Source: Callorhinchus milii
Lineage: Eukaryota
Reading direction: 5' to 3'
DNA length: 63,846 bases
NCBI RefSeq assembly: GCF_018977255.1
Contig: NW_024704771.1
Location: 3,658,155-3,722,000 of the forward strand
The position numbers and the translations under genes were made by a program. Each line of letters opens with the position of its first letter. Positions within the stretch are counted from its first letter, which is position 1. Of the stretch, positions 4,192 to 63,846 are shown in pieces. The notes under the pieces were generated by a model. The model worked only from the letters and a program-made list of their open reading frames with translations. It did no database searches and was not told the DNA's origin.

Positions 4192-4197
4192 TATAAA
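4192..4197 (+). promoter_or_regulatory. TATA box of the galectin-like gene
   Basis: TATAAA in unique sequence 88 nt upstream of the ATG at 4280. Confidence 0.55.
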
Positions 4198-4279
4198 TAT
4201 CCCACAGCCCAGTCCTGGCCACCTCACTCTCTCTCGCAGCAGGTCTCCACGTACACGAAGATCGCTCTCTCAGGACGAG

Positions 4280-4312
4280 ATGTCTATCGAGCCACAATGG
4301 TGTTGGAATCCG
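4280..4312 (+). CDS. Galectin-like gene, coding exon 1 (MSIEPQWCWNP)
   Basis: ATG to phase-0 donor CCG|GTAAAG; resembles the short first exons ending in NP/SP of galectin-4/-9 type genes. Confidence 0.7.
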
Positions 4313-4400
4313 GTAAAGACGCTTTCTTCCTCGTAGACGGGGTTCGGCAGTTTGGGTCGCGGGGGTGTTACAAACTGCCGTGCGACGTAGAAATTTGGTG

Positions 4401-4770
4401 GGAGTCCTGTAGCTCAGCGGTTCCAGCACTCGCCTCGCCAGCGAGAGGATCCAGGTTTGATTCCTGGGCGGGGACGATAATTTAGGCAGATTTCCTTACC
4501 CCCACACGCCTCTGTTTTCCTAACAGTAAGTAGGAACCCGATTGTTAGCCCATTGGTGGATCACTTTACTGGGGATGATAATCCCTCCCCAAAAAATAAT
4601 GATTTGGTCACTTAATCTACGACTGTTTGTGGGACGCCGCTGTGCGCAATCGGCCGCCACATTTCGCCCACAGAATATACAGTCAATTGACTTTACAGTA
4701 TACCCTGTGAAGCGCTCTGAGACGTATCGAAGACGTGACAAGGCGCCGTATCAAATGCGAGGATTGTTAG
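4401..4770 (+). mobile_element. tRNA-Ala-derived SINE (galectin intron 1)
   Basis: Full head, body and tail; further copies at about 4917-5275 and 5545-5895. Confidence 0.85.
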
Positions 4771-5400
4771 TATTACTTTGCCTTGAGCTGTCCAGGAAAA
4801 AAAATTATGTGGGGTGACTTAACACAGTAAACCTCCCACAAGTCGAATCACTTGGGGAACCATCCATTTAATACGAGCTGTGAGTTATGTCAAACCTGCG
4901 ATGCAATGTCGGAAAGGAGTCCTGAGGCTCACTCGCCTCGCAAGCGAGAGGACCTGGGTCCAATTCCCGGGCGGGGGCAAAACCTTCGGCAAGTTTCCTC
5001 GCTCCACGCACCTCAACTGCAGCGACTGCAACTAGTAGGAACCCGGTGGTTAGTCGGTTGGCGGATCGCTTTCCCTGGGATAACAATCCCTTCGGAAAAA
5101 TAATTTAAGAAACAATAATAATTGGGCCACTCAATCCACGACTGCCGAGCGCAATTGGCTGCCGCCGATTTCACCCACAAAATACACAGTCGACCGCTTT
5201 ACAGTGTATTCTGTGAAGCGCTTTGAGACGCATCAACGGTGTGACTGTATCAAGTGCAAGGATTATTATTATAATCAAATAATTGTGCTTTATTGTGATC
5301 CAGATTTGTGGGAGCACAGGTGGGGGGGGGGGGGGGGGTGAGGGGGGGAGATTTTATTTCTCCCTCGTGTTGTTGAGTCCTGCCTTCCTCCCTCTTTCAG

Positions 5401-5489
5401 GAAACTCCTTTTACTAAGCAGTTTCCTGTGGAACTCAAGCAAGATATGATGATCGTGATGTGTGGAAAAGTACCTTCTGACGCCAAGAG
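5401..5489 (+). CDS. Galectin-like gene, exon 2 (ETPFTKQFPVELKQDMMIVMCGKVPSDAK)
   Basis: Polypyrimidine-CAG acceptor, AG|GTTAGA donor, 89 nt, phase 0-2; fits the galectin P-F...L..G..I.I.G.V pattern. Confidence 0.8.
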
Positions 5490-6100
5490 GTTAGATATTA
5501 CCTTCGTTAATTCTCTGCTGTAATCCCAATATATAATATGCTCAGTGGTGAGAGCGCTCGCCTCGCAGGCGAGAGGATTCGGGCCGGGCAAAAAAACTAA
5601 GGCAGGTTTCCTTACTCCACGCCGCGCGCCTCTATTTACCCGGCAGTAAGTGGGAGCCGGTCGTTAGTCGATTGGGGATCACTTTCCGGGGGTTATAATC
5701 CTTTAACTAAAAATGTGGTCACTCAATCCACGACCGCTTGTGGGACGCTGCTGTGCGCAATTCGCTGCCGTGTTTCGCCCTCAAAATGCACAAAGCGATT
5801 CACTTTGCAATATATGAAGCGCTTTGAGACGTCTCAATGACGTGATAAGGGGCGACATCAAATGCGGAGATTATTATTTTTATTATTATTATTTTATCTG
5901 GGGATTGTCAGTCAGAAGGGAAAATCTCTTCGCTTTTCAAATAATGCCATGGGATCTTTTTTGTCCACCTGAACAGGCACCCACATACACCCACATACAC
6001 CCACATACACCCCCACACACACACCCCACACACACACACACCCACACACAGACCCCCCCACACACACACACATACACACACATACACCCCCACACACACA

Positions 6101-6248
6101 NNNNNNNNNNNNNNNNNNNNNNNNNNNNNNNNNNNNNNNNNNNNNNNNNNNNNNNNNNNNNNNNNNNNNNNNNNNNNNNNNNNNNNNNNNNNNNNNNNNN
6201 NNNNNNNNNNNNNNNNNNNNNNNNNNNNNNNNNNNNNNNNNNNNNNNN
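6101..6248. other. Assembly gap (N run) after a CA-rich microsatellite
   Basis: Run of N. Confidence 1.
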
Positions 6249-6425
6249 AAGATTTATGCGTTTGTTTCTCTGTTTGTTTATTGTGTGTTATTACGTATTA
6301 TTTGTTACGCGTTATTTAATACGTATCGTTGATTACTGTTTGATGGGCTTCCCGCGTTCGACACGGTTCTGGGGGTGAGATATCTTCCTGGGTGTCAATC
6401 ATACCTGACCTCTCGTTCTCCCCAG

Positions 6426-6633
6426 TTTTGTCATTAACTTCCAGAAGGGTGAAGGAGCCAACGTGAAGATTCCCTTCCAGCTCGGGGTTTGTTTCCAAGA
6501 GAATTCCGAGAAATTCATGTTCAGTTCCAAGGAATCTGCCGACTGGGAGCCGATGCAAGATCGCCCCATCTCCCCGAGCATTAAAGGGACCAACTTCAAG
6601 CTCACGTTCCTCGTTTGGAGTAACTGTTTTCAG
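6426..6633 (+). CDS. Galectin-like gene, exon 3 (FVINFQKGEGANVKIPFQLGVCFQENSEKFMFSSKESADWEPMQDRPISPSIKGTNFKLTFLVWSNCFQ)
   Basis: CCCCAG acceptor, CAG|GTACAG donor, 208 nt, phase 2-0; aligns by eye with the central 'W' exon of galectin CRDs. Confidence 0.85.
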
Positions 6634-7039
6634 GTACAGCATCGACAACAATAACAGCAAATGACACTTGCGCAGCGCCTTTCACGTCGGGAGGACGTCC
6701 CAAGGCGCCCGACAGGCGAGGGCTCGCACCCGAGCCGGGGGTTGGGATCCAGTGGGTAATAATAATAATAATAATAATAATAATTCTTGCATTTGATATC
6801 CCGCTGTGCGCAATTGGCTGCTGTGTTTCGCCCACAAGATCCGTCCCTTTACAGTATGAATGGAATTGGTCGCTCAATCCACACCCGTTTGTGGTGCAAT
6901 TAATTGGCTGCCGCGTTTTACCTTCCAATACATTCTGTGAAGTGCTTCCAGACGCTAAAGCGCTACGTCAAACGCAGGATTATGAGTATTATTATTATTA
7001 TTTTGATATAAAAGACCGCCGTGTGTTTGCTGTGACCAG

Positions 7040-7171
7040 GTGGCCCTCAATGCCAAGCACATTCTGAAATACAACCACAACGAACGAGACTGGAAAGCCG
7101 ATGGGATAAACGTGTACGGAGACTTACAAGTGAAGGATTTCACTGTCTACGACATCGACTGCAAAAAAAAA
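7040..7171 (+). CDS. Galectin-like gene, exon 4 (VALNAKHILKYNHNERDWKADGINVYGDLQVKDFTVYDIDCKKK)
   Basis: CCAG acceptor, phase 0; matches the galectin C-terminal VAVNG.H..EY.HR...I..L.I.GD pattern; donor GTAAAT at 7172. Confidence 0.85.
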
Positions 7172-8105
7172 GTAAATATCTTGTGTCACATGGAACTCAC
7201 TGCCTGGTCCCCTCAGGCCCCCCGAGACCCTCGTCCTCTCCTTCATCGCTTCCAGGCTCGACTATGCCAACTCCCTGCACGTCGGCCGTCCCACCTCCTC
7301 CCTCCACAAGCCACAGATCGTCTACACTCTGCAGCTCGTGTCCTCCCCCGCACCAGGCTCCGCGACCTCATCACCGCCGTCCTCTCCCGGCTCCGCTGGC
7401 TCCCACCTCCTGGAGGATAGAGTTCGAAATCCTCGCCCTCACCTTCAAAGCCCTTCGCGGCCTTGTTCCTTCTTAATTCTGTGACCTGCTGACTCCATCC
7501 AAACCCGTCCGCTCCCTCCGCTCAGTGGGCTCCGGCCGGGGGTCCACGTCCCCCGGCTGTTAGTCGATTTAACGTGTAATAATCGCAATAATAATCCTCG
7601 CATTGGACGCAGCGCCTCATCACGTCGTTGAGACGTCTCGAAGCTCTTCACCCAATGTACCGTAAAGCAAATTGACTTTATATTTCGAGGGCGAAATACG
7701 GCAGCCAATTGCACACAGCAGCGTCCCACAAACAACTCTGGGTTGAGTGACATTTTTATGGAGAAATTGGAAAGCAATCGACCAATTGACTAACAACCAG
7801 GTCCCTTACTTAACAGGGGTAATAATCCTAACCCCACCCACAGCAGCCCCATCCCACACACCCCCCCCACACAAAATGTGGTCACTCAACTACTGTTTGT
7901 GGGACACTGTTGTGCGCAATTGGTTGCTGCATTTCACCCACAAAATATACAGTCACTACATTTTACAGTATATCCTGCAAAGCGCTTTGAGATGTCTCAC
8001 CTACCTGATAAGGTGCTGCATCAAAAGCAAAGGCTATTATTATTGCATGTTAAGTTATCTACATGTTAAAGTGAATATTAATTTATGATTTGGGGTTTAT
8101 TTCAG

Positions 8106-8117
8106 GTAAACAAGTGA
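8106..8117 (+). CDS. Galectin-like gene, probable terminal exon (VNK-stop)
   Basis: TTTATTTCAG acceptor, phase 0 compatible, unique 3' UTR and AATAAA at 8292-8297. Confidence 0.45.
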   Translation, partial: VNK

Positions 8118-8783
8118 GCAATGGATCAGGTATGAGGCACTGATCATCCACACAAATCTCCCGCGGCTGTTGTGTGTTTCACTCGGCGATTCTCTCCCAC
8201 CGTTTCCCTCCCGGTCGTAACATTTGGGAGTTGCTTTAACCTCCACCCACTCTCCCCGGACCCGATTGAAACATGACCATTTCTCATTGCTAATAAAAAA
8301 TAGTCTTGGACTCGCTTTCTTGTGTCGCTGCGTTGTTTTTGAAGGACAGTTTTGTGTTCCTGCTGTTTGCACTGTATTCTCTTGTATTGTGTTCGAGCGT
8401 TCGCCTCGCGCACGAGAAGACCTTGGTTCCGTTCCCGGGCAGGGCCAAACCTTAGGAAAGTTTCCTTACCCCACACACACGCCTCCGTTCAACTTAATCC
8501 ATCCCCCTCCCCAATAAAGCCCTCACTGTCCAAGACCTCATCCTGGATGAGCACAGAAACCTGGCTCCTCCAGTGACCCCATTCCCTGTTGCCGTCTCCC
8601 CTTTTTACCTCTCCCATCCCCAACCACTCCCCCCGCCACCAACCACCGTGGCGGCGGGGGGAGTGGGGTGACCCTCACCTCCTAAGCTTCCCTTGGTCTG
8701 TCCCCCTATTCCTCTGGGACTATTTTTCTTCCTTTGAGCAGATCCTCCTCTCCCCCCTTCAACCTGTCACCACCATCAGCCAT

Positions 8784-9880: not shown

Positions 9881-10224
9881 TTCGCAGAATATACTGTAAA
9901 GTGTAGTAACTGCATATTTTGTGGATGAAACATGGCAGCCGATTGTGCGCGTAGTGCACATTTAGTCACTCAATCAGTCGTGGATTGAGTGACTAAATTA
10001 TTATATTTATTCATTTTGATGGGAATATTACCTCCAAAAAGTGATCCATAATCAACTAACAGAGGCGTGTGTGGGGATTAAGGAAACTTGCCTAACGTTT
10101 GTCTCCGACCGGGAATCAAACCCAGGTCCTCTCGCTTGCGAGGTGGGTGCTCTAACCACTGAGCTACAGGAACCCACAGGTCACAACACATATAATAATT
10201 AACATTACAATAATAATCATTGCC

Positions 10225-12272: not shown

Positions 12273-12805
12273 TTAACCTGTCACTGGGCAGATTCTCAGA
12301 GATTTTCCGTCATCCTTATGCCCGGGATTGAAGAGAGGATAAAGTTTATCAGTGAAAGTTTGGGAGAAAGTGTGGAGATGAGACATGTTGTCAGCGTTGT
12401 AAAATGTCACCTGTCCCTCCTCATAGTCCAGGTACACCCCGATCTTCCCGGGTCTCACTGTCAGCTTGAGGCGGGTGGGAGGTGAAGACAGAGCCCGATA
12501 GACACCTTCCCACAGCCAAGCACCCCAGACCCCGTCGTCTGGTGACCACGTGATTGGTCGTTTCCTGTTGACAGACTCTCTGCTCACTCCCACAGTCCAC
12601 TCAGTTTTGTTGCCCACCTGCACCTCCCAGTAATGTCTCCCTGATGTGAAGCCCTCAGATCCCAGGACAATGGGATCTTTACTAAACCTCTTCGGGGAGT
12701 CAGGGAGTGGCTGCCATTCGTCTCCACGTATCACACTGGTCAGGTCCTCAGACAGGATGAGCCGGGGATGGGCTGTGTCAGGATCCAGAGTCAGAGAGAC
12801 CGGAG
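12273..12805 (-). CDS. Butyrophilin-like gene A, terminal B30.2 (PRY-SPRY) exon
   Basis: [40 protein letters not shown] and LYPLFNP motifs; CAG acceptor, phase 1; open to TAA. Confidence 0.92.
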
Positions 12806-12879
12806 CTGAGTGAGAGAAATAACACAAAGTGGAGTGAGGGGGAAATCCACAAATTCAGACTTTGTGCAAAAACATCTGG

Positions 12880-13325
12880 GAACAAAGGCTCACAATGTGT
12901 GTAGTTGTGGGAGGTGTGTGGGTGTGTGTGGGGGTGGGGGGTGAGGGTGTGTGTGTGGGAATGTGAGGGTATATGTGTGTGGTGGGGGTGAGGGTGTGTG
13001 TGGGGGGGATGTTTGTGGGAGGGGGGCAATGTGAGGGTGTTTTGTGGGGGCAACGTGTATGGGGGGATGTGTGTGTGGGGGATGTAAACCCCCTTGGGTG
13101 TGGGGGAATGTGACGGTGTGTGAGAGTGGGGGGCTGAGGACGTGGGGGGGGTGTCAGGATGTTTGTGGGGGTGTTTAGGGTGTGTGGGGGGGCTGTGTTT
13201 TTTGGGAGGGGAATGTGTGTATGGGGGGGTGGAATGTGATGGTATGTGTGGATGTGAAGGTGTGTGCGCGTGGGGGAGATGTAAGGGCATGTGTGTGTGT
13301 GTGTGTGGTGGGGTGGGTGGGGGGG
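12880..13325. repeat. GT/G-rich low-complexity microsatellite
   Basis: Imperfect (GT)n and G runs. Confidence 0.9.
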
Positions 13326-13452
13326 AGGGCCCATGTGAATGTATTCATTCCACACATCACTGAGCTCCATTCAGACCCTCAGTCCCAGTGTTTAGCAATG
13401 AAGGCGACAGGTTTATGTGAATATTATGTTCTCTGGTTACTGAGACTCTTAC

Positions 13453-13479
13453 CTGCACAGTGGGTAAGCTTTCTCCTGT
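13453..13479 (-). CDS. BTN-like gene A, 27-nt cytoplasmic microexon (xRRKLTHCA)
   Basis: TTCCAG acceptor, GTAAGA donor, phase 1-1; identical exon in gene B at 29604-29630. Confidence 0.75.
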
Positions 13480-13569
13480 CTGGAAACAAGAAGAAAGGAG
13501 AGGTGATCAGGTCAGTGCTCTCGGCCATGTTTGTCCCCAGCCACAGATTTTAATGTGTGAGAGGCTGAA

Positions 13570-13900
13570 TAATAATAATAATAATAATAATAATCCTTGC
13601 ATTTGATATAGCGCTTTTCACGTCGGGAGGACGTCCCAAAGCGCTTCACAGAACACACTGTAAAGTGAATTGACTGTATATTTGTGGGCGAACGCGGCAG
13701 CCAATTGCGCACAGCAATGTCCCACAAACAGTCGTAGATTGAAAATGACCAATTTATTATTGTTTTTGGTTTTGGAGGGATTATTATTAGGCTCTGTGTG
13801 GAGTAAGGAAACTTGCCCAAGGTTTGGCCCTCTGCCTGGAATTGAACTCAGGTCTCTCGCTTGCAAAGCGAGTGCTCTAACCACTGAGCTACAGGACTCC
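13570..13900 (-). mobile_element. Young-subfamily tRNA-Ala SINE
   Basis: Near-identical to 35390-35709, 57062-57396 and (inverted) 52080-52405; anticodon loop TTTGCAA. Confidence 0.9.
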
Positions 13901-13969
13901 ACAAATATTAAATAAGGGGATAATTTTCTATACAAATTGTAGAGAAACAACAGGACCATAACACTGGAC

Positions 13970-14295
13970 TGTGATAAAGGTCGTGTGACCCAGGTTTGAT
14001 TCCAGGGCAAAGCCTTAAGCAAGTTTTCTTTCTCCACATACCTCTGTTTAAATAGCAGTAACTGGATGATTTGTTTGTTGATTTGCGGATCACTTTCGTG
14101 GGCAATTATCCCTCAAAAATAAATAATTTGATATTGTAATCCATGACTGTTTGTGGGATGCTGCTGTGCGCAATTGGCTGCCACATTTCACCCACAAAAT
14201 ATAGTCACTCCACTTTACAATATATTCTGTGAAGCGCTTTGAGAAGTCTCAATGACGTGATAAGGCGCTACATCAAATGCAAGGATTATTATTAT
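13970..14295 (+). mobile_element. tRNA-derived SINE, inverted relative to 13570-13900
   Basis: Degenerate head, conserved body and tail. Confidence 0.8.
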
Positions 14296-15299
14296 ATTGT
14301 GTTTCTGGTCCAACAAGGAGGGAGCAGCCCCAGAACTAACTCTAGGAAATGAAGTCAGGAAAGGAAGTCATGTCAGAAGGGAACATTGGTAAATAACGAC
14401 CGTCACACAATTAGAATTAATACCATAATCAAACCAGTTGGAAGAGTCTCAGGTAAAGGTTTGGACCGAAAAAGTAATGAGATGTGAGGGACCTGGAGTT
14501 CTAAATAGACCTAAATAGATATAACTGTGAAATATGTCAATGAGATTTCAGCACAACAGAAACAGTTGGTTGGTTTTGCTTACCCAGGCTTAGCTGAAGA
14601 GCTGTGGAATAGAAAATAAAATTGTTACCACCGAAAAATGGTTAAGACAGTAACAAACCTATTCTGAACATTGTATTATGGTGATGAATAATCTGCATCT
14701 TTACAACTTTAACCAGCGTTATAAATTACAGCAAATAAAACTCAACAGTTCACTATAATTCACCCGGGCTCTCGCCTCTGAGTCAGACGCCTGTCAGAGA
14801 CTTTCTCCACCTCCATAACATACCCACTTCCACCCCGACCTCCCCCTCGGGCCGCTGAGACCCTGATCCATGCATTCATGTTGTCCAGCCTAGATTATAC
14901 CAACTCTCTACTGCTGCACTATTTTCCCTTCATAAACTGCAGACTATGCAGAACTCTGCAGCTCGTGTCCTTTCCTGCACTGAGCTCTGCTCCCCATCAC
15001 CCCCATCTTTGCCCGGCTTCACTGGCTCCCCATCCGCCAGCGAATCGAGTTCAAGTTCCTCGACCTCACCTTCAAATCCCTCAATGTTCCACCCGACCTC
15101 TGCCACCTCCTCAAGGCTTCAAATACTATCACTGCCTCCACTCCGTGGCCACCAGCCTGCTTCACGTCCCCACCCTCCCCACCCACCATCAGTGGTCAGG
15201 CTTTCAGCCGATCTGCCCCCACTCTCTGGAGCCCGGAGTCTCTTCATCTCCTCCCCCTATTCACAATCATTGTTAAACTTCTTTTATATTGATATATAC

Positions 15300-15795
15300 A
15301 CACACCCTCAACCACCCACCCACCCTCACCCAGCCTCAGCCACCCACCCACCCACCATCACCCAGCCTCAGCCACCCACCCACCCACCATCACCCAGCCT
15401 CAGCCACCCACCCACCCACCATCACCCAGCCTCAGCCAACCACCCACCATCACCCAGCCTCAGCCACCCACCCACCCACCATCACCCAGCCTCAGCCACC
15501 CACCCACCCACCATCACCCAGCCTCAGCCAACCACCCACCCACCATCACCCAGCATTCAACCACCCACCCACCCACCATCACCCAGCCTCAGCCACCCAC
15601 CCACCCACCATCACCCAGCCTCAGCCAACCACCCACCCACCATCGCCCAGCCTCAGTCAACCACCCACCCACCATCACCAAGCCTCAGCCAACCACCCAC
15701 CCTCACCCGCCCGCCCTCAACCAACCACCCACCGACACTCACCCACCCACACCTACTCACCCACCCTCAACCACACTCACTCACCATCCACACTC
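15300..15795. repeat. C-rich minisatellite (unit about CACCCACCCACCATCACCCAGCCTCAGC)
   Basis: Direct tandem repetition. Confidence 0.9.
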
Positions 15796-16061
15796 ACCCA
15801 ATAAAAGGGTTATTCCCACAAACTGACGACGTACAAAAAACACACCCATGTTATTGCCACGAGCTAAACCCCTCTCTCTGTCTCTGTGGATTGTGAACTG
15901 GATTAGAATGATCCTGTGTTACTAGATCAACCTCTGACCCACACAATCACATAAAACTTTACCGGTCATTCTATATCAAAGTTTATAAAACTTATACTTT
16001 TACATGAAAACAAACTGTGTTCTGTGACTTATGATGAAAGAGATTATTGATGGGAATTTAC

Positions 16062-16181
16062 CATTGATATCTCTGCGCTGTTTTACACTGTAGCCGATAA
16101 GAACAATCAGCACCAATATGGCAAGTGCTAAGAACACTGAGGAAATCACCAAACCCACTGGCACTTTGGGAAAGAACTCGT
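16062..16181 (-). CDS. BTN-like gene A, transmembrane exon (DEFFPKVPVGLVISSVFLALAILVLIVLIGYSVKQRRDIN)
   Basis: 120 nt, phase 1-1, hydrophobic stretch followed by basic stop-transfer residues. Confidence 0.88.
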
Positions 16182-16877
16182 CTGTTGAGAAATGTAAATA
16201 GACATTTAAACATCTATTCTGATTTCAAACAGCTACCTATTTACCCACATGTGACTATACTACACACAACACAAGCCTTTCACACTCTATACGTATCTCT
16301 GTCCTGCTAATAGCAATGTCACATCTCACTGTTACATGAATATATTCCATTAAAATCACTGATGGGAGAGGAAAACATGGCTTCATCATCTCAGGGTTGG
16401 GATAGACATTGTAAACCCTAAAGTTCATTATCTAAATATATGAGTGTTAAACTAAGGGCTACAATTAACCTTATTACTCACCTCAATCGTTCCCAATATC
16501 CAATTCTCTTAATTTTACCGATGTAATTGTATAGGATGCTATAAATTTGTAATAAATAAATCTAAATATTAATTTACGTATCAAATGCAAGGATTTTTTA
16601 TTATAAATGTGTTTTATTGTCAGGTCAAACAATTTGGAGAGCAGGGCAGGCGAGGACAGGAAGCAGGCAGTGTTTGCTGAGGGGAGGCAGTGCCCAGGGA
16701 GGTAAGTTTAATAAAATATCTTTAACTCAAAAGTACTCAGCTGCTGGAGAAGGTTAATGCCACGTCAGCTCACTGGACACTTTTAAGAAACAGGTTGGAG
16801 CTGGAATGGAAGGTGGTGGGTTTGGTATTTTGAGAAGATGTGATCAAATGGGCTGAAGGGTTTTCTTTATCTGCAAT

Positions 16878-17460
16878 GGGGTCTCCTCGGAGCTGAACTG
16901 GCCCCAAGGTGAAATGTTTGGCAACGGAAAGTTGGAATCGAGCCAGGCCTCTGTGACGGTCTCTGGTCCGGTTCCTGAGCCGCAGTATTCCAGGGCACTC
17001 ACTGCTGATGGCTCCACAGCCCAGCCTGGCTCATCGGCAGGAGCTGGAAGGACCGACCACCCACTGGAGGCAGGGAATCATCCCACTCAGCTCCTGCAGC
17101 CAAACCCCTAACTAACAGGTAGGGTGGTCCTAGCTGGAGAAACAGTAGGAAAGCTTGCCTGACTATGATAGCAATGGTAAGCTGTATGGTTTTAGCTGAT
17201 TAGACTCTAGCAGTTACCCCAACACACACTATGGGGTCCCCAAGCCTTGGCTCTTGCCAACCTGTGCCTAATACTCTCCGGAATTAGGTCAGCAGGATGC
17301 ATCCCTCCAGGGAGAGAGTGCGCATTCCATTCTAACAGTCTGTCTCTGGGATTTCCATGTGTAGGTGGATGCCTGGAAATTCTCAGTTGGGTTTGGAGAC
17401 TCTTAAGCATCGAGATAGGTTTCTGAATGTGTCAGAAACACAGCTGACCAAACAAAATCC
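16878..17460. mobile_element. Unclassified 583-bp insertion, absent from the paralogous intron of gene B
   Basis: Its flanks join directly in gene B (about 33345-33480); candidate degenerate 9-bp TSD ATCTGCAAT (16869-16877) / ATCTGAACT (17461-17469). Confidence 0.65.
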
Positions 17461-17554
17461 ATCTGAACTGATCTTGTATTCACTTTGTTTCTTACAAAAC
17501 CAGCAGCACATCTATCAAACTGTCACTAATATCTCAGTCCATGTGGTCACTGAC

Positions 17555-17600
17555 CTGAGATGGAGTTTTCCTTCTTGTTCATTTCTCTCGAGACCTAGTG
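17555..17600 (-). pseudogene. Relic duplicate of the 3' end of the IgC exon, with its donor
   Basis: ATATCTCAGTCCATGTGGTCACTGACCTGAGAT occurs both here and at the functional IgC donor (17935). Confidence 0.6.
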
Positions 17601-17934
17601 ATGTTATTGACTCATTACTCACTGTATCCAAACAGTGTGAGGTAACAGTAAATAAATAGGCCAGGAGGATGCTGAGTTTTATTACCAAATCACCTCAACT
17701 CAACTCCCCAGAAACAATTGTGAAACAGCACAGTTCTCTGGTCAGGTCACACCTGGATATTATACACAGATCTGACCACCTCAAAATAATGACATCAGAA
17801 GGTCCTGAGGACAACGCAGAAAACTACAGAGGCTGATCCTCAATATCCTGGTTACATCTGATAGAAATCACTTCATGTGTTACAGAAACCAACACCATTT
17901 CTCACACAATATCTCAGTCCATGTGGTCACTGAC

Positions 17935-18207
17935 CTGAGATTTGGAATCTTGTTTCTTGTTCATCTTCTGAATTGCGAATCAGAAACCTGATCTTGTTGG
18001 TTGAATGTTTTATTTCTATTTGACTGTTAATGTTGAAGAGATCTTTAGAATTCTTGCTGACTGTCAAGTGACTGAGTTTTGTTAAGTTGTTTCCCTGATC
18101 ATCAACCCACAGAGCCTCTGGTGCTGGGAACCATCCACTGGATTCACACAGCAGCCTCACACCACCATTGTGTTCATCAACGTGAATCCAAGGCTGACTG
18201 CCAAGTC
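17935..18207 (-). CDS. BTN-like gene A, IgC exon (GLGSQPWIHVDEHNGGVRLLCESSGWFPAPEALW...KIRFLIRNSEDEQETRFQIS)
   Basis: 273 nt, phase 1-1; BTN-type LG S.P...G+RL.C.S.GWFP.P motif; second Cys replaced by Phe. Confidence 0.9.
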
Positions 18208-18776
18208 CTGCAAGAGACAGAAGATGTGAATCAGACATAATAATACTTGCATTTGATATAGTGCCTTATATCGTTGAGACGTCTCAAAGCGCTTCATAGA
18301 GTATACTTTGTGGGCGAAACACGGCAGACAATTGCGCAAAGCAGTGTCCCACAAACAGTCGTGGATTGAGGGTCAGATCAGTTCAGATGGATTGTTTTTA
18401 AAAAAGGGATTATTACACCCAGAAAGCGATCTGCTGATCGACTAACAACCAGGTTCCTATTTAATGGTAGGTAAACAGAGGCATGTGGTGTACGGAAATG
18501 TAAGGTTTTGCCCTGTCCAGGAATCAAATTCAGGTCCTCTCGCTTGTGGAGCAAGCACTCTAACCACACACGGAATGAACCATATTTACACACAGGACAT
18601 TACAGTCCAGTAACTTTACTGAAGCCACATTTGCAACATTCTGACTACATTTATACGGATTCGTTCGTTTTCCTGTGTATGTCACGCATTTTATTTTGAA
18701 CAGAAATAACATCAACAAATAATGAACACTTGTTGTACCCACAGATTATATAAAATAAATTGTAAACATTACTGAC

Positions 18777-19124
18777 CTATAACGTTCAAGTTTACCTCTG
18801 CCTCTTCGTGGAAACTGCCGAGCTGAACATAACACGTGTACTGTCCATTATCTGACCCCCGCACATCTTGCAGTCTGAGAGACACATTGCCGTTCATAAT
18901 CTCCTCTACAAACAGTCCTGTCCTGTGTCTGTAGGCTGTATCCTGCTCACTTGGCTGCTCATGTCCCTCATTGTATAAGATCACAGGGGAGTCGTATCTC
19001 GTCCTGAACCATCTCACCTCCAGACGCTCTAGTGACAGGTGTGTGGAACACTTACAGTCCAGGACAACATCCGAACCAGCAGTGGCTGGGACAGGGTGGT
19101 CAGGGCCACTGACTGTGAATCTCT
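18777..19124 (-). CDS. BTN-like gene A, IgV exon
   Basis: 348 nt, phase 1-1; F.V.GP..P+.A..G.DVVL.C, EVRWFR, YR.RT.L, GNVSLRL..VR.SD.G.Y.C motifs. Confidence 0.92.
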
Positions 19125-19479
19125 CTGTGAATCTCTCTGGTTAATAACAAACAATGGACACAATTAGGATTTTCAGAATCAAACTGACTCTGACAAACTC
19201 TGTCAATAGACAGTCACTCATGTTAGCAGTGTTAGGATACTCAGAGAAACCTCAGCAAATCTCTCAAACTGCCTGGTCAGGTTAGCCCATCAGGTGATGT
19301 CTCTCACAGGCTGGAAGGGTTGGAGACATTGGCTGTAAATTCACCTGAAGCCAGTTTGTACATAGCGTCTGTTAGACAGAGAAACAATACATTAGGCAGC
19401 TCATCGAGTCTGTGATAATACTGGAAGTCTCATGTGACAATTTTCATATATTGAAAGAGGGAAATCAACAGATTCCAAT

Positions 19480-22847: not shown

Positions 22848-23074
22848 TGCCAGAGTTTTCACCAATAACGACCTCCACACTGTCACCAGCGCTCTCTACT
22901 GGCGGCGGTACACCATCAGTGCTGTTTATCCTGTATTCAGCAACTGACCCTCTGATGTGGATCTCTCACCGGCTCACACACTGCCCCCCTAGTGCCCCGC
23001 CTTCCCTCCTGCAGCCCTCCTGCTCGGTGACCCCACTCACTCCACTTTGTGTGATTTCTCTCTCTCTCTCTCAG

Positions 23075-23610
23075 CTCCGGCCGCTCTGACTCTGGATCCT
23101 GACACAGCCCATCCCCGGCTAATCCTGTCTGAGGACCTGACCAGTGAGCGACGGACGGAGACAAACAGCAGCTGGTCCCCGACTCCCGGAAGAGGTGTAG
23201 TTACTGGCCCTTTGTCCTGGGATCTGAGGGCTTCACATCAGGGAGACATTACTGGGAGGTGCAGGTGGGCAACAAGACTGCGTGGATTGTGGAAGTGGCC
23301 AGAGAGTCCATCAACAGGAACAGCAACATCACATGGACACCAGAGGGTGAGGTCTGGGCTGTGGGATGGAGCCTATGAGGCTATGACGTCATCTTTCACC
23401 CGCCTGCGCCTGACAGTGAGACCCGGGAAGATCGGGGTTTTCCTGGATTATGAGGAGGGACAGGTGATAATTTACAACGCTGATAACATGTCTCATCTCC
23501 ACACTTTCACTCAAACTTTCCATGAGAAAGTTTATCCTCTCTTCAGTCCCTTGTTTGATTCTGAGAATCTGCCCAGTGACAGGTTAATCAGGAGAAAATT
23601 TCACTTATAA
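23075..23610 (+). pseudogene. TRIM relic, B30.2 exon with two compensating frameshifts
   Basis: PRY start and SPRY end are in one frame; [19 protein letters not shown] is in another frame. Confidence 0.85.
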
Positions 23611-26489: not shown

Positions 26490-27034
26490 TTAATCTGTCA
26501 CTGGGCAGATTCTCAGAAGCTCAGAGTTTTCCCCACCATAATTATGCCAGGGATTGAAGAGAGGATAAAGTTTCTCTTTGAAAGTTTGGGTGAAAGTGTG
26601 GAGATGAGACATGTTATCAGCGTTGTAAAATATCACCTGTCCCCCCTCGTAGTCCAGGTACACCCCGATCTTCCCGGGTCTCACTGTCAGGTTGAGGCGG
26701 GTGAGAGGTGACGTCATAGCCTTATAGTCTCCGTCCCACAGCCACACAGCCCAGAACCCACCTTCTGTTGCCTCTGTGATTGCTTGTTTCCTGTTGATGG
26801 ACTCTCTGGCTACTCCCACAATCCACGCAGTCTTGTTGCCCACCTGCACCTCCCAGTAATGTCTCCCTGATGTGAAGCCCTCAGATCCCAGGACAATGAG
26901 ATAGTAACTAAACCTCTTTGGGGTGTCAGTGAGCTGCTGCTGACATTTGTCTCCGCATCGCACACTGGTCAGGTCCTCAGACAGGATGAGTCGGGGATGG
27001 GCTGTGTCAGGATCCAGAGTCAGAGAGGCCGGAG
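26490..27034 (-). CDS. Butyrophilin-like gene B, terminal B30.2 exon
   Basis: Same motifs as gene A; CAG acceptor, phase 1; 545 nt open to TAA. Confidence 0.92.
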
Positions 27035-27164
27035 CTGAGAGAGAGAGAAATAACACAAAGTGAAGTGAGGGGGAAATCCACAAATTTAGACTTTGTGTAC
27101 AAAAACTACACCTGGAAACAAAGGTCCAGTGTGTGCGGTGGGGGAGTTGTGTGGGTGGGGAGAG

Positions 27165-29440
27165 GGTATCAACCAGGGAACAGGCGATCCTGGGTCTTGT
27201 TTTATGTAATGAAATAGGGTTAATCAGCAATCTGGAAGTTAAGGCTCCTCCTCGAGGGCAGAGTGACCATAACATGATGGAATTTAGCATTAAGTTAGAG
27301 AGTGCTGTTAAGTCCGAAGCAAGGGTCTTAAATTTAAATAGAGCCAACTTTGCAGCTATTAGATTAAAGGATATGACAGTAGACCAGTAATGGTAAATCT
27401 TTAAAGATACAGTACATATTTCCCAGCGATCACATATTCCCTTGAGGAAAAAAGTACCACAGGAAAAATGGTTCAACCATGGCTAACTAGAGCAGAATAA
27501 AATTAAGAGAGCAGTAAACCTGAAGATTGGGAGGGCTTCAATGACCAACAAAGAAAGACTAAGAAACTGATTAGGAAGGAGAAAATGGATTTTGAGGGCA
27601 AACTCGCGAGGAATATAAAGACACACTGCAAGAGAGGATAAAGAGGAAGAGACTAACAAAAGTGAATGTTTGTCCAATACAGGCAGAGACAGGAGGAATT
27701 ATAATGGGGGGAAAAGATATGGCAGAGCCATTAAACAAATACTTTGCTTCTGTCTTCACATTAGAAGACACTGAAAACCTACCAAAAATAGAGGGGAACC
27801 AAGAGGCTAATGTTAGTGAGCAACTTAGGGAAATCAACATCAGTAAAGAATTAGTACTATGGAAAGTGTTGGGATTGAAAAATGACAAATCCCCTGGACC
27901 TGATGGTCTGCATCTTAGGGGTTTAAAAGAGGTGGCTACTGAGATAGTGGATGCCTTGTTTTTGAACTTCCAGAATTCTCTGGATTCTGGAACGATTCCC
28001 ATTGGTCGGAAGATCGCAAACGTAACACCACTATTTAAGAAGAGTGGGGGAGAGAAGATGGGGAACTATAGACCAGTCAGTCTGACATCGATGGGAGCAA
28101 AAATTCTCGAATCTTCAATTGGGGACTTCGTAGTAGTGTACTTAGAGGACCATAAAATGATTAGGCAGAGTCAAAATGGCTTTACAAAAGGGAAGTCACG
28201 CTTAACAAATATTTTAGAGTTTTTTGAGGATGTAACTAGCAGGTTAGATAGGCGGGAACCAGTAGATTATAATATATTTAGATTTTGAGAAGGCATTCAA
28301 CAAGGTCCCACATAAAAGGCTGCCACACTAGATGATGGCACATGGAATTAAAGGCAATATATTAGCATGGATCAAAGAGTGGCTAACGGGAAGAAAACAG
28401 AGTAGGGATAAATGGGTCCTTCTCAGCTTGGCAGGATCATTACTTGGGCCTCAACTATTTACAATCTATATCAATGATCTAGACGAGAACATAGAACTTA
28501 AAATATCTAAATGCGTGGATGATACTAAGCTAGGTGGGAGAGTAAACTCTGCGGAAGACACAAAAAGATTGCAAAGGGATTATAGATAGGCTAGGGTGAG
28601 TGGGCAAGAAGGTGGCAGATGGAATATAATGTGGGGAGGTATGAAGTTATTCACTTAGGTAGTTAAAAACAGAAAAGCAGATTATTTTCTTGAAGGGGAG
28701 GGAGGGATCTGAGGGATTTGAGTGTCCTTGTACACTAGTCACAAAATGTTAGTATGCAGGTACAGCAAGCAACGAGGAAGGCTAATGGCTTGTTGGCGTT
28801 TATTGCAAAAGGGTTAGAATACAAGAGTAGAGAAGTCTTGCTGCAACTGCATAAGGCCTTGGTGAGATCTCATCTAGAATATTTTGTGCAGTCTTGGCCT
28901 CCTTATTCAAGAAAGGACATAGAGGGGAAAGGACATAGAGGGGGTGCAACGTAGATTCACTAGGTTAGTTCCTGGGATGAGGGGGTTGACCTATGAGGCT
29001 AGGTTGAGTAAACTAGGCCTATATTCTCCAGAATATAGAAGATTTAGGTGTGATCTTGTAGAAACTTATAAGATTCTTATGGGGCTTGACAGAGTAAAAG
29101 TACATAATAATTCTTCCATTTGATATAGCGCTTTTCACGTCTTCTAAACGTCTCAAAGAACTTCACAGAATATGAATTCACAAAAGTGAATTTACTGTAA
29201 ATTTGTGGGAGAAACACGGCAGCCAATTGCGCCAATTTGTATCCCACAAATAGTCATGGATTGAAGTGACCAATTTATTATTGTTTTTTTCTTGAGAGAT
29301 TATTATCAGACGTAATAATTAGCAATTAGTAGACAGTGCGAGACCATTTCCCCTGGTAGGTGAATCTAGAACTAGGGGTCACAGTCTTAAGATTAAGGGT
29401 CAGTCTTTTCAAATAGAGGAAACACTACTCAGAGTGTAGT
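27165..29440 (+). mobile_element. CR1-type LINE ORF2 fragment (RT), degenerate, with a SINE inserted at about 29100-29310
   Basis: KSPGPDG, NVTPLFKK, GNYRPVSLTS, GFTKGKS.LTN..EFFE.VT and LGPQLFTIYINDLD motifs, broken by stops and frameshifts; absent from the gene A intron. Confidence 0.92.
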
Positions 29441-29603
29441 GAATTTCAGTATAAATTCCAGTATTACTGTGCTCATTCTACACGTCACTGACCAGTCGGT
29501 AACAGATTGCAGGAGTTCCATTCAGACCCTCAGTCCCAGTGATTAGCAATGAAGGCGACAGGTTTATGTGAATATTATGTTCTCTGGTTACTGAGACTCT
29601 TAC

Positions 29604-29630
29604 CTGCACAGTGGGTAAGCTTTCTCCTGT
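29604..29630 (-). CDS. BTN-like gene B, 27-nt microexon
   Basis: Identical to 13453-13479, with the same splice sites. Confidence 0.75.
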
Positions 29631-29749
29631 CTGGAAACAAGAAGAAAGAAGAGGTGATCAGGTCAGCGCTACACGGCTCTGTTTAACTTAATTCCACGTT
29701 ACCCCACCCACAGATTTTAATGTGTCAGAGGCTGAATATTAAATAAGTG

Positions 29750-30290
29750 AAGATTTTTTTTACACAAATAGGAGCGAGGTGTATGGTGGAGGGACTGTGG
29801 GATGGAGTTCCAGAGAATGGGGTCAGAGAGGCAGAAGGCCAGCCAACCAATGGTGGGGTGGGCGAGACGGGGAGCGCAAGGCCATGGAGGGCTTTGAAAG
29901 TGCGGAACAGAATCTTGAACTGTATCCTCTGTGTGATGGGAAACCCGTGGAGTCGGGCGAGAATGGAGGTGATAGGGTCACTGAGCCTGATTTGGTAGAG
30001 GACACAGGCTGCAGAGTTCTGGATGATCTGCAGCCTATGAAGGGAGGAGTTGGGGAGGTCGACAAGCGGGGAGTTTGCATAGTCGCACACTGATGTTATG
30101 AATGCGTGTATGAGACTCTCAGCAGCCTGTGGTGTGAGACAGTTGCGGAGCCGGGCCATGTTGCTGAGGTGGGGGAAGGCAGAGCAGGATATGGCACAGA
30201 TGTTGGGTAGAAAGGATAGTTGGGCTCAAATAAGATGCCAAGGATCTGGACTGGCTTAGCAAGGTGGAGTGTGTATCCTTGGATGGTGAG
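29750..30290 (-). mobile_element. L2 LINE fragment
   Basis: AAESLIHAFITS..DYANS, LQIIQNSAA, HGFPITQRIQFKIL. Confidence 0.8.
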
Positions 30291-31789
30291 GAAATGAAAT
30301 GAGGAAAGGATGTCATGTCAGAGGAGGGAACACTGGCAAACTACGTCTGTCGCACAATTAAAATTCATACAATAATCAAACGAGTTGGAAGAGTTCAGGA
30401 CTGAAACAGAAATGAGATGTGAGGGACCTAGAGTTAAAAAAAAAGACAGAAACAGACCGAAGTCAAACAGTGGTTAACTATCAAATACCAGATTGATAGG
30501 GGAGAAAAGAAACAATCGTATATGAAATAAAGGGATTCCTGCAAAAGCTTTGGATGAGAAATGACATAATATCTGTCAAAATAACAGATAATATTTTTCC
30601 AATGCTAAACACAGGCAGTTTAGAGAATTCGCACAGGTGTCATTCCATCACATTGTTTCGTTGCCTCACTCCATGTCATTGTCTTTAACTCTTTCTTGCC
30701 TTTGAGTCTCTCTAACTTTGGCCGTCTTCTAATGTTCACAGTTGATTATAGTTATAATTATAATTACAGTTAATGTATACTTTTCTCTCTGTCTCTCTAT
30801 GTAGCTTTCTCTGTGTCGCCTCTCTAACTGTTCAGTTAATTAACATTGACCTCTCTCGGTCTTGTCTCTCTGCTGGTTTATGATTGTGTGAAACACATTT
30901 CACAGTAAATATAATTATTTGGCGATGTGATGATCTGATAATCTGACAAAACGCTGATTGTTGATTCAGGTAAAAATCGGTTAATCTGGACAGAATGTCT
31001 CGCTGGTCACCACTGTGTCCACTCACTCGCCGCAAGAGTCTCCGGGATGGAGATGATTGTGGCTGAATGACAGTGGCCTCCAACCATTCACGAGTGAGGT
31101 GAGGCGGAGGAATGGGGAGAGAATGGGAGGAGTCAAATTGGGATTGATTGCTGATGGGAACGTTGATTAACTTTGGACGCCACATAAACCGGACAAAACG
31201 TCTAGTCCCGATGGGCCTGGTTTAAGCGGCTCCTCCTGTATGTCAATGAGATTGCTCAACAACAGAAACAGTTGGTTGGTTTTGCTTACCCAGTCTTAGC
31301 TGAAGAGCTGTTGAATAAAAACAAATTGTTACCACCGAAAAATGATTGGAGCAGCGACAAACATTCTGAATATTGCATTATGGTGATGAATAATCTGCAT
31401 CTTTACAACTTTAACCAACGTCAGCAAATACAACTCAACAGTTCACTACAATTCACCCGGGCTCTCACCTCCGAGTCAGAAGGTTGTGGGTTGAAGCCGC
31501 TGGTCAGAGACTTTCCCCACCTCCATAACATCACCCACTTCCACCACAACCTCCCACCACAGGCCGTTGAGACCCTAATCCACGCATTCATCACGTCCAG
31601 TCCAGATTACACCAACTCTCTGCTGCTGCACTATCTGCCTGTTCCCTTCACTGACTGGAACTCTGCAGCTCATGTCCTTTCCCTTCCTGGAGCCCCTTCC
31701 TGGAGCCCCTTCCTTAGCTACCTTCAAAATCCATCTCAAGACCTTCCTCTTTCACCGTATGTTCAGCCTCTAAACTGGGGATGTGTGGG

Positions 31790-32060
31790 ATGCTGTGTTG
31801 TGCTCTCCATCAGGTGAGAATTAAACCGAGGCCCCATCTGCCTGTTCAGACAGAGGTTAAAGATGCCATTGAACTAATTGAAAAGATAAGGGAGTTTGGG
31901 CCAGTGTCCTGGCCGATAATTCCCCAAATAAAAAAATTGATCAATCATTTTATGGCTGTTTGTGGGATGTTGCTGTACGCAAATTAGCTCCTGCATTTGA
32001 CTACATCACACTCAGTCACTGCAATTTACAGTGTATCCTGTGAAATGCTTTGCGACGTCT
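31790..32060 (+). mobile_element. Older DeuSINE/SacSINE1-like copy
   Basis: TTAAACCGAGGCCCCATCTGCC...AAAGATGCCAT...GCTGTTTGTGGGATGTTGCTGT; recognised from memory, needs a Dfam/Repbase check. Confidence 0.5.
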
Positions 32061-32458
32061 TCCTTTCGTGAAATTGATTATTATTGATAACAATTACTTG
32101 TACCTCATTCACAATTAATTTTCATCTTATGTATAGAACATGTTATGTAGAGAAAGATGAAGACAGATATATAGAATATACACATACATATAGATGGGGG
32201 GGAAAGGGTTATTACCATAAACTGACAACATACAAAAAACACACCCGTTATTGCCATGAGCTAACCCCTCGCTCTGTCTCTGTGGTTTGTGAACTAGATT
32301 AGAATGATCCGTTGTTATTAGATAAACCTCTGACCCACACATTCACGTAAAACTTTACCAGCTATTCTATATCAAAATTGATAAAATATAAAATATTTTT
32401 ACATGAAAACAAACTGTTCTCTGACTTGTGATGAGAGTCGTTACTGGTGGGAACGTAC

Positions 32459-32578
32459 CTTTAATCGCTCGGTGCTGTTTTACGCCATAATTGACAAGAA
32501 AACTCAGCACCAATATGGCAAGTCCTAAGAACACTGAGGAAACCACCAAACCCACTGGCACTTTGGGAAAGAACTCAT
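32459..32578 (-). CDS. BTN-like gene B, transmembrane exon (DEFFPKVPVGLVVSSVFLGLAILVLSFLVNYGVKQHRAIK)
   Basis: 120 nt, phase 1-1, paralogous to 16062-16181. Confidence 0.88.
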
Positions 32579-33499
32579 CTGTCGAGAAATGTAAAGAGAC
32601 ATTTAAACATCTATTCTGATATCAAACTACAAATGCTTATGTGACTGTTTTACACACAACACAAACCTCTCACATGCTACACTTATCTCTGTCCTGCTAA
32701 TAGCAATGTCACATCTCTCTGTTACATGAATCTATTTCATTGGTTTCATCATCTCGGGTGGTGTGGGGGGGAAATAGACATTATAAATCACCCAAAGTTC
32801 ATTATCCGAATTTATCACAGTGTTAAACTCACGGCTACAATTAACAACAAAAAATATATATTTGTATAATGCCTTTCACCTCAGGAGAATGTCCAAGGAG
32901 CTGGACAGTTAGTGTTTCGGACCCGAACTGGGGGTCAGCATTGGAGTTGGTGGAGGACAGGGGGGAAGCAGAATGTTCGAAAGCACGGTCAAAGAGGAGG
33001 GTCTTGAAGGAGGTAAGAAATAGGGCAAGGCGGAGGGACAGAAAGCTCGCCCGCCAGTGGTGGGGCGGGCGATGCGGGGGATGTGAAGCGGAGGGAGCAC
33101 ACAAGTTGGTACGGGGTTAGGAGGTCGCAGAGTTAAGGGGGAGCAAGGCCATGGAGGGCTTTGAAGGTGAGGACCAGGACCTTGAACTGCATCCTTTGTG
33201 TGATGAGAAACAAGTGGAGTTGGGCAAGGATGGGGTTGATAGGGTCGTGGTGCGTCAGAAGATGGGTTGCAGAGTACTGGATGATTTGCAGCCTATGGAG
33301 GGAGTCACTGGACACATTGACGAAACAGGTTGGTACTGCAATGGAAGGTGGTGGGTTTGGCATTTTGAGAAGATGAGATCAAACAGACAGAATGGTTTTC
33401 TTCATCTCAAATAATCTTGTATTCATTTGATGTGTTGCACAACTCAGCGACACATCTATCAGATTCTCACTAATATTTCAGGCTGATGTGGTCACTGAC

Positions 33500-33781
33500 C
33501 TGAGATTTGGAGATTTCCTTCTTGCTCATCTCTCAGTAACTTGCTGCGAATCAGACACCTGATCTTGTTGGTAGAATAATTTATTTCTATTTCACTTTGA
33601 ATATTGAGGAAACCCTCAGAATCCTTTCTAACTGTCAAGTTACTGAGTGTTGTTAAGTTGTTTCCCTGCACATCAACCCACAGAACTTCTGGTGCTGGGA
33701 ACCATCCATTGGATTCACACAGTAGCCTCACACCACCATTGTGGTGACCATCAACACGAACCAAAGGCTGACTGCCAAGAC
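33500..33781 (-). CDS. BTN-like gene B, IgC exon
   Basis: 282 nt, phase 1-1, both Cys present (LLCES, KIRCLI). Confidence 0.9.
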
Positions 33782-33930
33782 CTTGAAGGAAGCAGAAAAA
33801 TGTGAATCAAATATGCAATAAACAAGAATATAAAAAAGTTCTTGTTTGCAATTTGCTACACAAAATAATTTACAATTAATGATATTTACTCATATGTTAC
33901 ACATAATAAAAAGATCTAAACATTACTGAC

Positions 33931-63832: not shown

Positions 63833-63846
63833 CTAGGAAGAGATTC

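Follow-up and report, generated by a model that had tools for sequence, protein, structure and literature searches.

What becomes of a galectin gene that stays intact while its sugar-binding signature is lost? This question is raised by a gene at positions 4280 to 8117 (plus strand) of a stretch of 63,846 nucleotides (nt) of elephant-shark (Callorhinchus milii) DNA (RefSeq assembly GCF_018977255.1, contig NW_024704771.1, positions 3,658,155 to 3,722,000 of the forward strand), referred to here at its full length as the window. A preliminary description, made from the letters alone, had read the gene as a maintained non-lectin galectin of one domain, possibly a protein-binding or redox-sensitive partner. 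The locus is an intact five-exon gene for a single-domain galectin-fold protein. Taken as a whole, the data are best explained, with a probability of roughly 0.7, by a galectin-related protein with a remodelled site that has been maintained as a non-lectin and that is the C. milii orthologue in a family (family A) with members in the great white shark (Carcharodon), the cloudy catshark (Scyliorhinus torazame) and the little skate (Leucoraja).

The coding sequence is distributed over five exons, all on the plus strand. Exon 1 (4280..4312, 33 nt, phase 0, donor GT) encodes MSIEPQWCWNP, and a 33-nt first coding exon is likewise present in Carcharodon and Leucoraja. Exon 2 (5401..5489, 89 nt, bounded by AG and GT and ending in phase 2) covers strands S1-F2, and exon 3 (6426..6633, 208 nt) covers strands S3 to F4, including the degenerate sugar site (Q59, G61, C63, M72, S74, W81, M84 and D86). 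Strands F4-F5-S2-F1 and the C-terminal Cys151 are encoded by exon 4 (7040..7171), the length of which, 132 nt, is kept in Carcharodon and S. torazame. The coding part of exon 5 (8106..8117, 12 nt; 9 nt in the Carcharodon equivalent) adds VNK and the TGA and is required to match the database protein of 157 amino acids (aa). Spliced together, the pieces (33+89+208+132+12 = 474 nt) encode 157 aa with the TGA in the last piece; all four introns are of the GT-AG type and there is no internal stop. A putative promoter element, the TATA-box-like TATAAATA (4192..4199, plus strand), lies 88 nt 5' of the ATG, and an AATAAA polyadenylation signal (8292..8297, plus strand) lies about 175 nt 3' of the stop, both read from the sequence. 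The exon plan of the preliminary description, including a fifth exon given there as probable, and its two flanking signals were thus recovered in full.

The 157-aa product shares 100% identity along its entire sequence with RefSeq XP_007905084.1 and UniProt V9L9T8_CALMI, both from C. milii, and the same gene span of 3838 nt is present on scaffold MU249860.1 of GCA_018977255.1. We take the V9K/V9L series of C. milii UniProt entries to come from the cDNA set of the genome project, which, if correct, would supply transcript support for each of the four splice junctions. Hence the gene model is already known from RefSeq and UniProt, under a misleading name: RefSeq calls the protein "galectin-8", previously "galectin-9-like", a label that could contaminate galectin-8 phylogenies.

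An assembly gap of 148 N (6101..6248) lies inside intron 2 (5490-6425), 611 nt past the donor and 177 nt before the acceptor, with a simple repeat of the CA/CCCACA type just before it. Because the gap is wholly intronic, its unknown length has no effect on the reading frame. The codon of Ser41 is split over the intron, with two bases contributed by exon 2 and the third by exon 3. The junction of these exons is ungapped in protein alignments to the N-terminal domain of galectin-8 (galectin-8N) and to the shark and skate orthologues, in which an 89-nt exon is likewise followed by one of 205 nt. These observations argue that no coding exon is missing at the gap; a facultative exon may lie within it.

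The galectin fold of the product is well supported. The Pfam profile PF00337 (Gal-bind_lectin) matched residues 14-144 over its positions 1-130 of 132 with an E-value of 2.5e-23 and a score of 82.4 bits against a cut-off of 22.1, a distance that makes a chance match untenable, and this was the sole galectin domain. The closest solved relatives in the PDB are the N-terminal carbohydrate-recognition domains (CRDs) of galectin-8, 9 and 4, galectin-8N ranking above galectin-4N and 9N by a small margin. An AlphaFold2 (AF2) model built on a seven-sequence family alignment predicted a two-sheet beta-sandwich of 12 strands (predicted local distance difference test score, pLDDT, 81; predicted template modelling score, pTM, 0.79). 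When this model was compared with solved structures by Foldseek, the best matches were galectin-8N and 9N (template modelling score, TM, 0.76-0.83) and the top 50 were all galectin CRDs (TM 0.74-0.83). The profile and structure searches thus bear out the fold named in the preliminary description, the latter on a predicted structure.

Nothing beyond this one domain was found. The 157 residues make up a single domain, which is followed by the stop and the AATAAA signal, and a tblastn search of the whole window for a second CRD or a paralogue returned only the five exons. Two weak tblastn matches, at 18.1 and 33.7 kb, fall on the opposite strand in immunoglobulin constant-type (IgC) exons of butyrophilin (BTN)-like genes and were rejected as chance. 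The A-family orthologues, too, are only 150-155 aa long, in line with the single domain described before. The protein has no signal peptide and its N-terminus is not hydrophobic; the lack of a signal peptide suggests that it would reside primarily in the cytosol or nucleus, as other galectins do.

The sugar site itself is extensively altered. Both in alignments to solved galectins and in the joint family alignment, the motif H-x-N-x-R reads Q59-L-G61-V-C63, V-x-N reads M72-F-S74 and W-G-x-E-x-R reads W81-E-P-M84-Q-D86. Trp81 is the only one of the seven sugar-contacting residues (H, N, R, N, W, E, R) to be kept. His is replaced by Gln59, the two Asn by Gly61 and Ser74, the two Arg by Cys63 and Asp86, and Glu by Met84, with Met72 in the place of Val, such that the canonical galectin signature is absent. 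Five cysteines are present, at positions 8, 32, 63, 108 and 151. The alignments therefore reproduce the motif losses and the cysteine count read earlier from the letters, and from these replacements canonical beta-galactoside binding has probably been lost.

Relatives were sought by scanning 1.84 billion representatives in full with HMMER; outside cartilaginous fish none above 31% identity was found. Cartilaginous fish hold two single-domain families of this type. Family A comprises, besides the C. milii protein, a Carcharodon protein named "galectin-8-like" (P0159, 46% identity), S. torazame proteins (P0151/P0020, 41-42%) and a Leucoraja protein (P0019, 41%). Family B comprises a second C. 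milii protein, likewise named "galectin-8-like" (P0161), together with proteins from Carcharodon, Pristiophorus, Hemitrygon, Mobula and Cetorhinus; its C. milii gene lies on scaffold MU249837.1 (L005:10001-16224), between SEC22A-like and adenylate-cyclase genes. The two families are sister paralogues that share the type of exon plan, the size and the taxonomic range, but they differ in cysteine content (one in B, five to eight in A) and in conservation, chimaera and shark proteins being 79-80% identical in B and 45% in A.

Comparison within the families indicates that the losses at the site are for the greater part old and common to family A as a whole. Four of the six losses are common to all A members (Asn to Gly/Ala, Asn to Ser, Glu to Met and Arg to Asp/Glu), Arg to Cys at position 63 is common to C. 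milii and the sharks and is not found in skate, and only His to Gln is specific to C. milii. Ser74, Trp81, Met84, Cys32, Cys108 and Cys151 are invariant in family A, in which 26% of the columns are invariant overall, and Trp81 is invariant in all members of A and B. Since Ser74 and Met84 do not vary within A, the replacement residues are themselves conserved. Family B keeps five of the seven contacts (His, Asn, Arg, Asn and Trp), with Glu to Gln and Arg to Glu. A graded series results, from 7/7 contacts in the N-terminal CRD of a tandem-repeat galectin that is sister to both families (see below) through 5/7 in B and 2 to 3/7 in elasmobranch A to 1/7 in C. milii A, and this series could be used for asking what the galectin fold does after lectin function is lost.

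Exon plans were mapped from the genomic loci. The C. milii A gene, with coding exons of 33/89/208/132/12 nt, corresponds to 33/89/205/132/9 nt in Carcharodon, 33/89/205/126 nt in Leucoraja and 205/132/9 nt in S. torazame, in the last case preceded by either a fused 33+89 exon or an alternative start. The C. milii B gene has exons of 30/89/208/120 nt, and the N-terminal CRD of a tandem-repeat galectin of Scyliorhinus canicula is encoded by exons of 89, about 211 and about 125 nt. An 89-nt exon stands at the same position in A, B, shark LGALSL and this tandem-repeat galectin. The middle exon, however, separates them: in A and B it measures 205-208 nt and ends at "...NC(F/Y)Q|V" in strand F4, whereas in shark LGALSL it measures 175-178 nt and ends 10 residues earlier, at "...DQPFR|LE". 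A short middle exon, ending in strand F3 (CRD2 type), is characteristic of LGALS1, 2, 3, GRIFIN, LGALSL and LGALSL2 (PMC10343441, section 3.3). The position of the intron in F4 thus marks A and B as being of the N-terminal (CRD1) type, in keeping with the exon plan of a galectin-4/9 N-CRD named in the preliminary description. A 2023 review of galectin evolution names the amniote LGALS7, 10, 13, 14 and 16 as the only single-CRD genes of jawed vertebrates with a long middle exon of the N-terminal type (PMC10343441, section 3.3). Families A and B, absent from that review, are two further exceptions, and the rule should be amended accordingly.

Maximum-likelihood trees of the CRDs were calculated in two runs, the second with more LGALSL rows; LGALSL2 was not among the rows. 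The rows for chicken GRIFIN and for human LGALSL, galectin-8 and galectin-9 were taken from database search output, and those for human galectin-1, 2, 3C, 4N and 7 served as labelled landmarks only. Family A was recovered with a support of 100/99, as was the clade of A and B (100/99), and the branching order within A is that of the species, with the chimaera diverging first, then the skate, then the two sharks. The sister of A and B is formed by the N-terminal CRD of the S. canicula tandem-repeat galectin XP_038642139, annotated "galectin-9B-like/galectin-8-like", and a Hemitrygon protein (support 95/91 in the first tree, 83/91 in the second), and A, B and this sister all sit among the N-terminal-type CRDs. 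The N-CRD clade of LGALS8 (98/94 and 99/94) does not include A or B. LGALSL forms a clade (100/100) that includes C. milii LGALSL, lies among the CRD2 domains and groups with galectin-8C, and chicken GRIFIN, the single GRIFIN row, groups with galectin-1/2/3, which are landmark rows here.

LGALSL exists as a separate gene in C. milii, Carcharodon, Leucoraja and S. torazame, with 63-69% identity to the human protein, and the protein studied here is only 22% identical to C. milii LGALSL. Forcing A and B together with the seven LGALSL rows was rejected (difference in log likelihood, delta lnL, 27.6; approximately unbiased test, p-AU 0.017), while p was 0.17 in each case when LGALSL or GRIFIN was represented by a single sequence. 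The separate LGALSL genes and the rejected grouping bear on a caveat of the preliminary description, that the gene might be a plain orthologue of LGALSL or GRIFIN, and speak against it. These relationships place the gene as the chimaera member of a family restricted to cartilaginous fish, distinct from LGALS8, LGALSL and GRIFIN, and both A and B seem to go back to the N-terminal CRD of a tandem-repeat galectin. A plausible course of events would start with a duplication of a long-middle-exon N-terminal CRD that gave rise to A and B ahead of the split between chimaeras and elasmobranchs. The ancestor of A would have had its polar and charged sugar contacts replaced (Asn to Gly/Ala, Asn to Ser, Glu to Met and Arg to Asp/Glu), with Trp retained throughout; Arg to Cys would have arisen in chimaera and sharks, and His to Gln would have been added in C. 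milii.

Selective constraint was estimated from codon comparisons. In pairs that include C. milii the proportion of synonymous differences (pS) is 0.77-0.82 and that of nonsynonymous differences (pN) 0.35-0.39; synonymous sites are saturated, which makes the Nei-Gojobori method (NG86) unusable for these pairs. A Goldman-Yang codon model gave an omega of 0.10 for the four A genes and 0.11 with B included, each a single family-wide value that is rough owing to saturation. Between the A genes of Carcharodon and S. torazame NG86 yielded dN 0.18-0.23, dS 1.35-1.54 and omega 0.13-0.15; LGALSL of the same two sharks, used as a yardstick, gave dS 0.47, dN 0.035 and omega 0.07. In the protein tree the terminal branch of C. 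milii measures 0.44, compared to elasmobranch paths of 0.41-0.59 from the same node. The C. milii branch is thus not lengthened and no sign of recent relaxation was seen on it. These values point to purifying selection on the A-family gene and, together with orthologues of conserved exon plan in chimaera, sharks and skate, they agree with the earlier view of a maintained gene.

Loss of six contacts in a gene that is kept under selection indicates that the protein probably has some role other than galactoside binding. The remodelled and more hydrophobic concave groove (Trp81, Met84, Met72, Cys63 and Ser74), the three invariant cysteines, or both, would then accommodate a ligand other than a glycan, or one of a non-canonical kind, with a protein or peptide as the likeliest candidate. 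The support for the protein-binding or redox idea consists of the three invariant cysteines (32, 108 and 151) and the conserved replacements in the groove, which may be read in this way. A bolder version holds that the A groove has been rebuilt as a new and conserved ligand site (Trp81-x-Pro-Met84-x-Asp, Ser74 and Cys63, plus the three invariant cysteines), which would make the protein a fast-evolving intracellular adaptor or sensor peculiar to cartilaginous fish and a partner of the neighbouring BTN-like (B30.2) receptors. We regard this version as a long shot; if true, it would amount to a new kind of galectin-fold protein partner, beyond one more inactive lectin.

Several observations weigh against a maintained non-lectin of family A. 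Trp81 is kept and may still offer a stacking surface to some carbohydrate or another ligand, and the non-lectin status is deduced from residues in an alignment. The evidence of expression consists of database entries. Owing to saturation, constraint on the C. milii branch is seen indirectly, through the intact reading frame, the splice sites and the normal branch length. Family A evolves fast, with a chimaera-shark identity of 45% compared to about 80% for B and LGALSL, and between the two sharks its dS is threefold that of LGALSL. Some of the "orthologues" may accordingly be old paralogues from a multi-copy region; alternatively, the mutation rate may be raised locally. All A-family genes found lie on unplaced scaffolds or near a chromosome end, and this placement together with the high dS suggests an unstable multi-copy region. 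Finally, the BTN-like neighbourhood was seen in C. milii alone. Neither called genes nor BTN-like exons were found in the 10-kb flanks of the elasmobranch loci (Carcharodon, S. torazame twice, Leucoraja and the S. canicula relative), a negative that is uninformative in genomes of this large size.

The main rival to the non-lectin reading is that the protein is still a lectin, of altered specificity, in which Trp81 and the reshaped groove bind another sugar or a modified glycan. The invariance of Trp81 throughout A and B and the conserved, non-random nature of the groove residues would suit such a protein, and galectins with incomplete signatures, for example galectin-10, have been reported to bind other sugars weakly. 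However, six of the seven contacts are gone, including all of the hydrogen-bonding His, Asn, Arg and Glu, and Gly, Cys, Met and Ser are poor hydrogen-bond partners for sugar hydroxyls; on balance we consider this reading unlikely. A decaying or recently disabled copy, its frame open by chance, fares worse. The fast evolution (45% identity to shark), the loss of His59 in C. milii only and a repeat-rich, gap-containing region full of short interspersed nuclear elements (SINEs) might be expected of such a copy, but its 157-codon frame is intact over five exons with all splice sites canonical, and the protein is entered in UniProt as V9L9T8. Moreover, four of the six losses occur throughout the four lineages and a fifth is lacking only in the skate, so that by usual dating the frame and the exon plan have been kept for more than 400 million years after the site was lost; omega is 0.10-0.15 and the C. 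milii branch is not lengthened. Decay is hence very unlikely.

It is still less probable that the gene is a true galectin-8, or that the model is cut short and overlooks the C-terminal CRD of a tandem-repeat galectin, despite the RefSeq name and the N-CRD of galectin-8 being the top structure and reference match. Identity to human galectin-8N is only 27%, no second CRD is present in the window, and the first domain is followed by a stop, an AATAAA signal and, 4 kb further on, a convergent BTN-like gene. Family A lies outside the well-supported N-CRD clade of LGALS8, and the residues by which galectin-8N binds sialic acid have no counterpart: Ser41 and Val43 stand opposite Arg45 and Gln47, and the position of Arg59 is deleted. 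The true LGALS8 of C. milii is the tandem-repeat gene LOC121848525, flanked by actn2 (actn2b) and heatr1 (PMC10343441; PMC4989294), a synteny conserved in Chondrichthyes and Sarcopterygii; the neighbours here are BTN-like genes instead. That the gene is the cartilaginous-fish orthologue of LGALSL (GRP) or of GRIFIN has next to no probability. The single CRD with a degenerate site recalls LGALSL and mammalian GRIFIN, and the one-reference tests did not reject either grouping, yet a separate LGALSL exists in four species and the joint clade with seven rows was rejected. The intron position is of the long type in A and B and of the short type in LGALSL and GRIFIN, LGALSL shows a different pattern of loss (Trp lost, Asn and Glu kept), and the place of GRIFIN in the trees is with galectin-1/2/3. 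The tests made thus contradict each of three readings: a pseudogene, a truncated galectin-8 and an orthologue of LGALSL or GRIFIN.

The maintained, galectin-related protein that we favour can be set beside several known systems. The N-CRD of galectin-8 is its best sequence match (62 bits; PDB E-values 1e-12 to 1e-18), and with galectin-8N, 9N and 4N it shares a three-exon CRD with a long S3-F4 middle exon and the N-terminal stretches "NP-x-x-PF" and "VPSDA". It differs from galectin-8 in the low identity, in having neither a linker nor a second CRD, in six of seven contacts, in the lack of counterparts for the three sialic-acid-binding residues and in its genomic neighbours. LGALSL (GRP/HSPC159) is similar in being a single galectin-fold domain without the lactose-binding residues or a signal peptide and under purifying selection, but it is of the CRD2 type with a short middle exon, has lost other residues and shows a chimaera-shark identity of 80%, compared to 45% in A. 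GRIFIN also has one CRD and has lost sugar binding in some lineages (mammals), but it is a CRD2-type relative of galectin-1/2 (PMC10343441) with only 18% identity (25 bits) to the C. milii protein.

The closest parallel in origin is offered by the amniote LGALS7, 10, 13, 14 and 16, single-domain genes that likewise arose from the N-terminal long-exon CRD of a tandem-repeat gene (PMC10343441, section 3.3). These derive from the N-CRD of LGALS4 and lie beside that gene, whereas family A would have arisen independently in cartilaginous fish, and in A the loss is more complete. LGALS4 was not found in the window, and galectin-7 and 4N, both landmark rows, form a separate group in the trees. Galectin-10, 13 and 16 have partly degenerate sites, and galectin-13 is a disulfide-linked dimer. 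In the library searched we found no paper on family A, nor one on a galectin-related protein in sharks, and the two reviews that touch on galectins, butyrophilins and cartilaginous fish together are unrelated to it. The vertebrate galectin inventory would thus gain two families, and A would be one more, independently arisen CRD copy of a tandem-repeat galectin that has persisted over hundreds of millions of years after losing its sugar contacts; nothing points to an unknown mechanism. As a separate observation from the HMMER scan, catfish (Ictalurus punctatus, I. furcatus and Ameiurus melas; P0002-P0011) encode giant proteins of 1400-3800 aa with 9-25 tandem galectin domains, for example 19 matched domains in XP_053533828.1, and these giants topped the HMMER list by summed score.

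Beyond the galectin gene, the window holds exons of BTN type, as expected from the BTN/B7 cluster noted earlier: V-set, BTN-type C2-set_3 and PRY/SPRY exons were all found. A butyrophilin-like gene on the minus strand (12276..19140) encodes a 462-aa product with V-set, C2-set_3 and PRY/SPRY domains (immunoglobulin variable-type (IgV) exon 18772-19140, BTN-type IgC 17930-18265, PRY/SPRY 12276-12854), and the galectin gene is convergent with it, tail to tail at a distance of 4 kb. A second BTN-like gene (26496-34294, minus strand) comprises IgV (33926-34294), IgC (33495-33806) and PRY/SPRY (about 26496-27050) exons. At least these two genes look complete, and their IgV exons are 81% identical, which suggests a recent tandem duplication. 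Further BTN-type pieces lie on the minus strand at 39487-40059, 46979-47149 and 50048-50416. An inverted PRY/SPRY (B30.2) exon on the plus strand (about 22993-23607) is probably a pseudo-exon; its match is split between frames (23229-23372 and 23374-23586). At the end of the window, V-set and C1-set exons (58748-59245 and 62832-63845, minus strand), which are not of the BTN C2-set_3 type, belong to a different immunoglobulin-superfamily gene that runs off the window.

Some further features of the window were noted. An isolated open frame in the middle of the BTN cluster (40636-40890, plus strand) corresponds to the C-terminal end of a cytochrome P450 (PF00067, E 1.6e-11), with an FSxGxRxCxG-like heme motif. 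ARAGORN reported nine tRNA-like matches, eight for Ala and one for Pro (2347-2418, 2836-2907, 4404-4475, 10100-10173, 13825-13897, 49980-50052, 52071-52145, 57321-57393 and 61273-61344), which represent the heads of a tRNA-derived SINE of about 370 nt. Copies of this SINE occur in both orientations in introns 1, 2 and 4 of the galectin gene and in its flanks, with partial inverted matches in intron 3 (repeat families D2-D7 and I1-I4). Reverse-transcriptase (RVT_1) fragments of elements resembling long interspersed nuclear elements (LINEs) lie at 27596-28586 (plus strand) and 54164-54844 (minus strand). A second assembly gap (43191-43391, 201 N) is situated in an AT-rich region (GC content 0.31 in 42-44 kb). 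The long His/Pro/Thr-rich frames at 12781-13370 and 15277-15893 derive from CA-rich/CCCAC-type simple repeats and are not genes, and the same type of repeat accounts for the strong GC skew in 10-16 kb.

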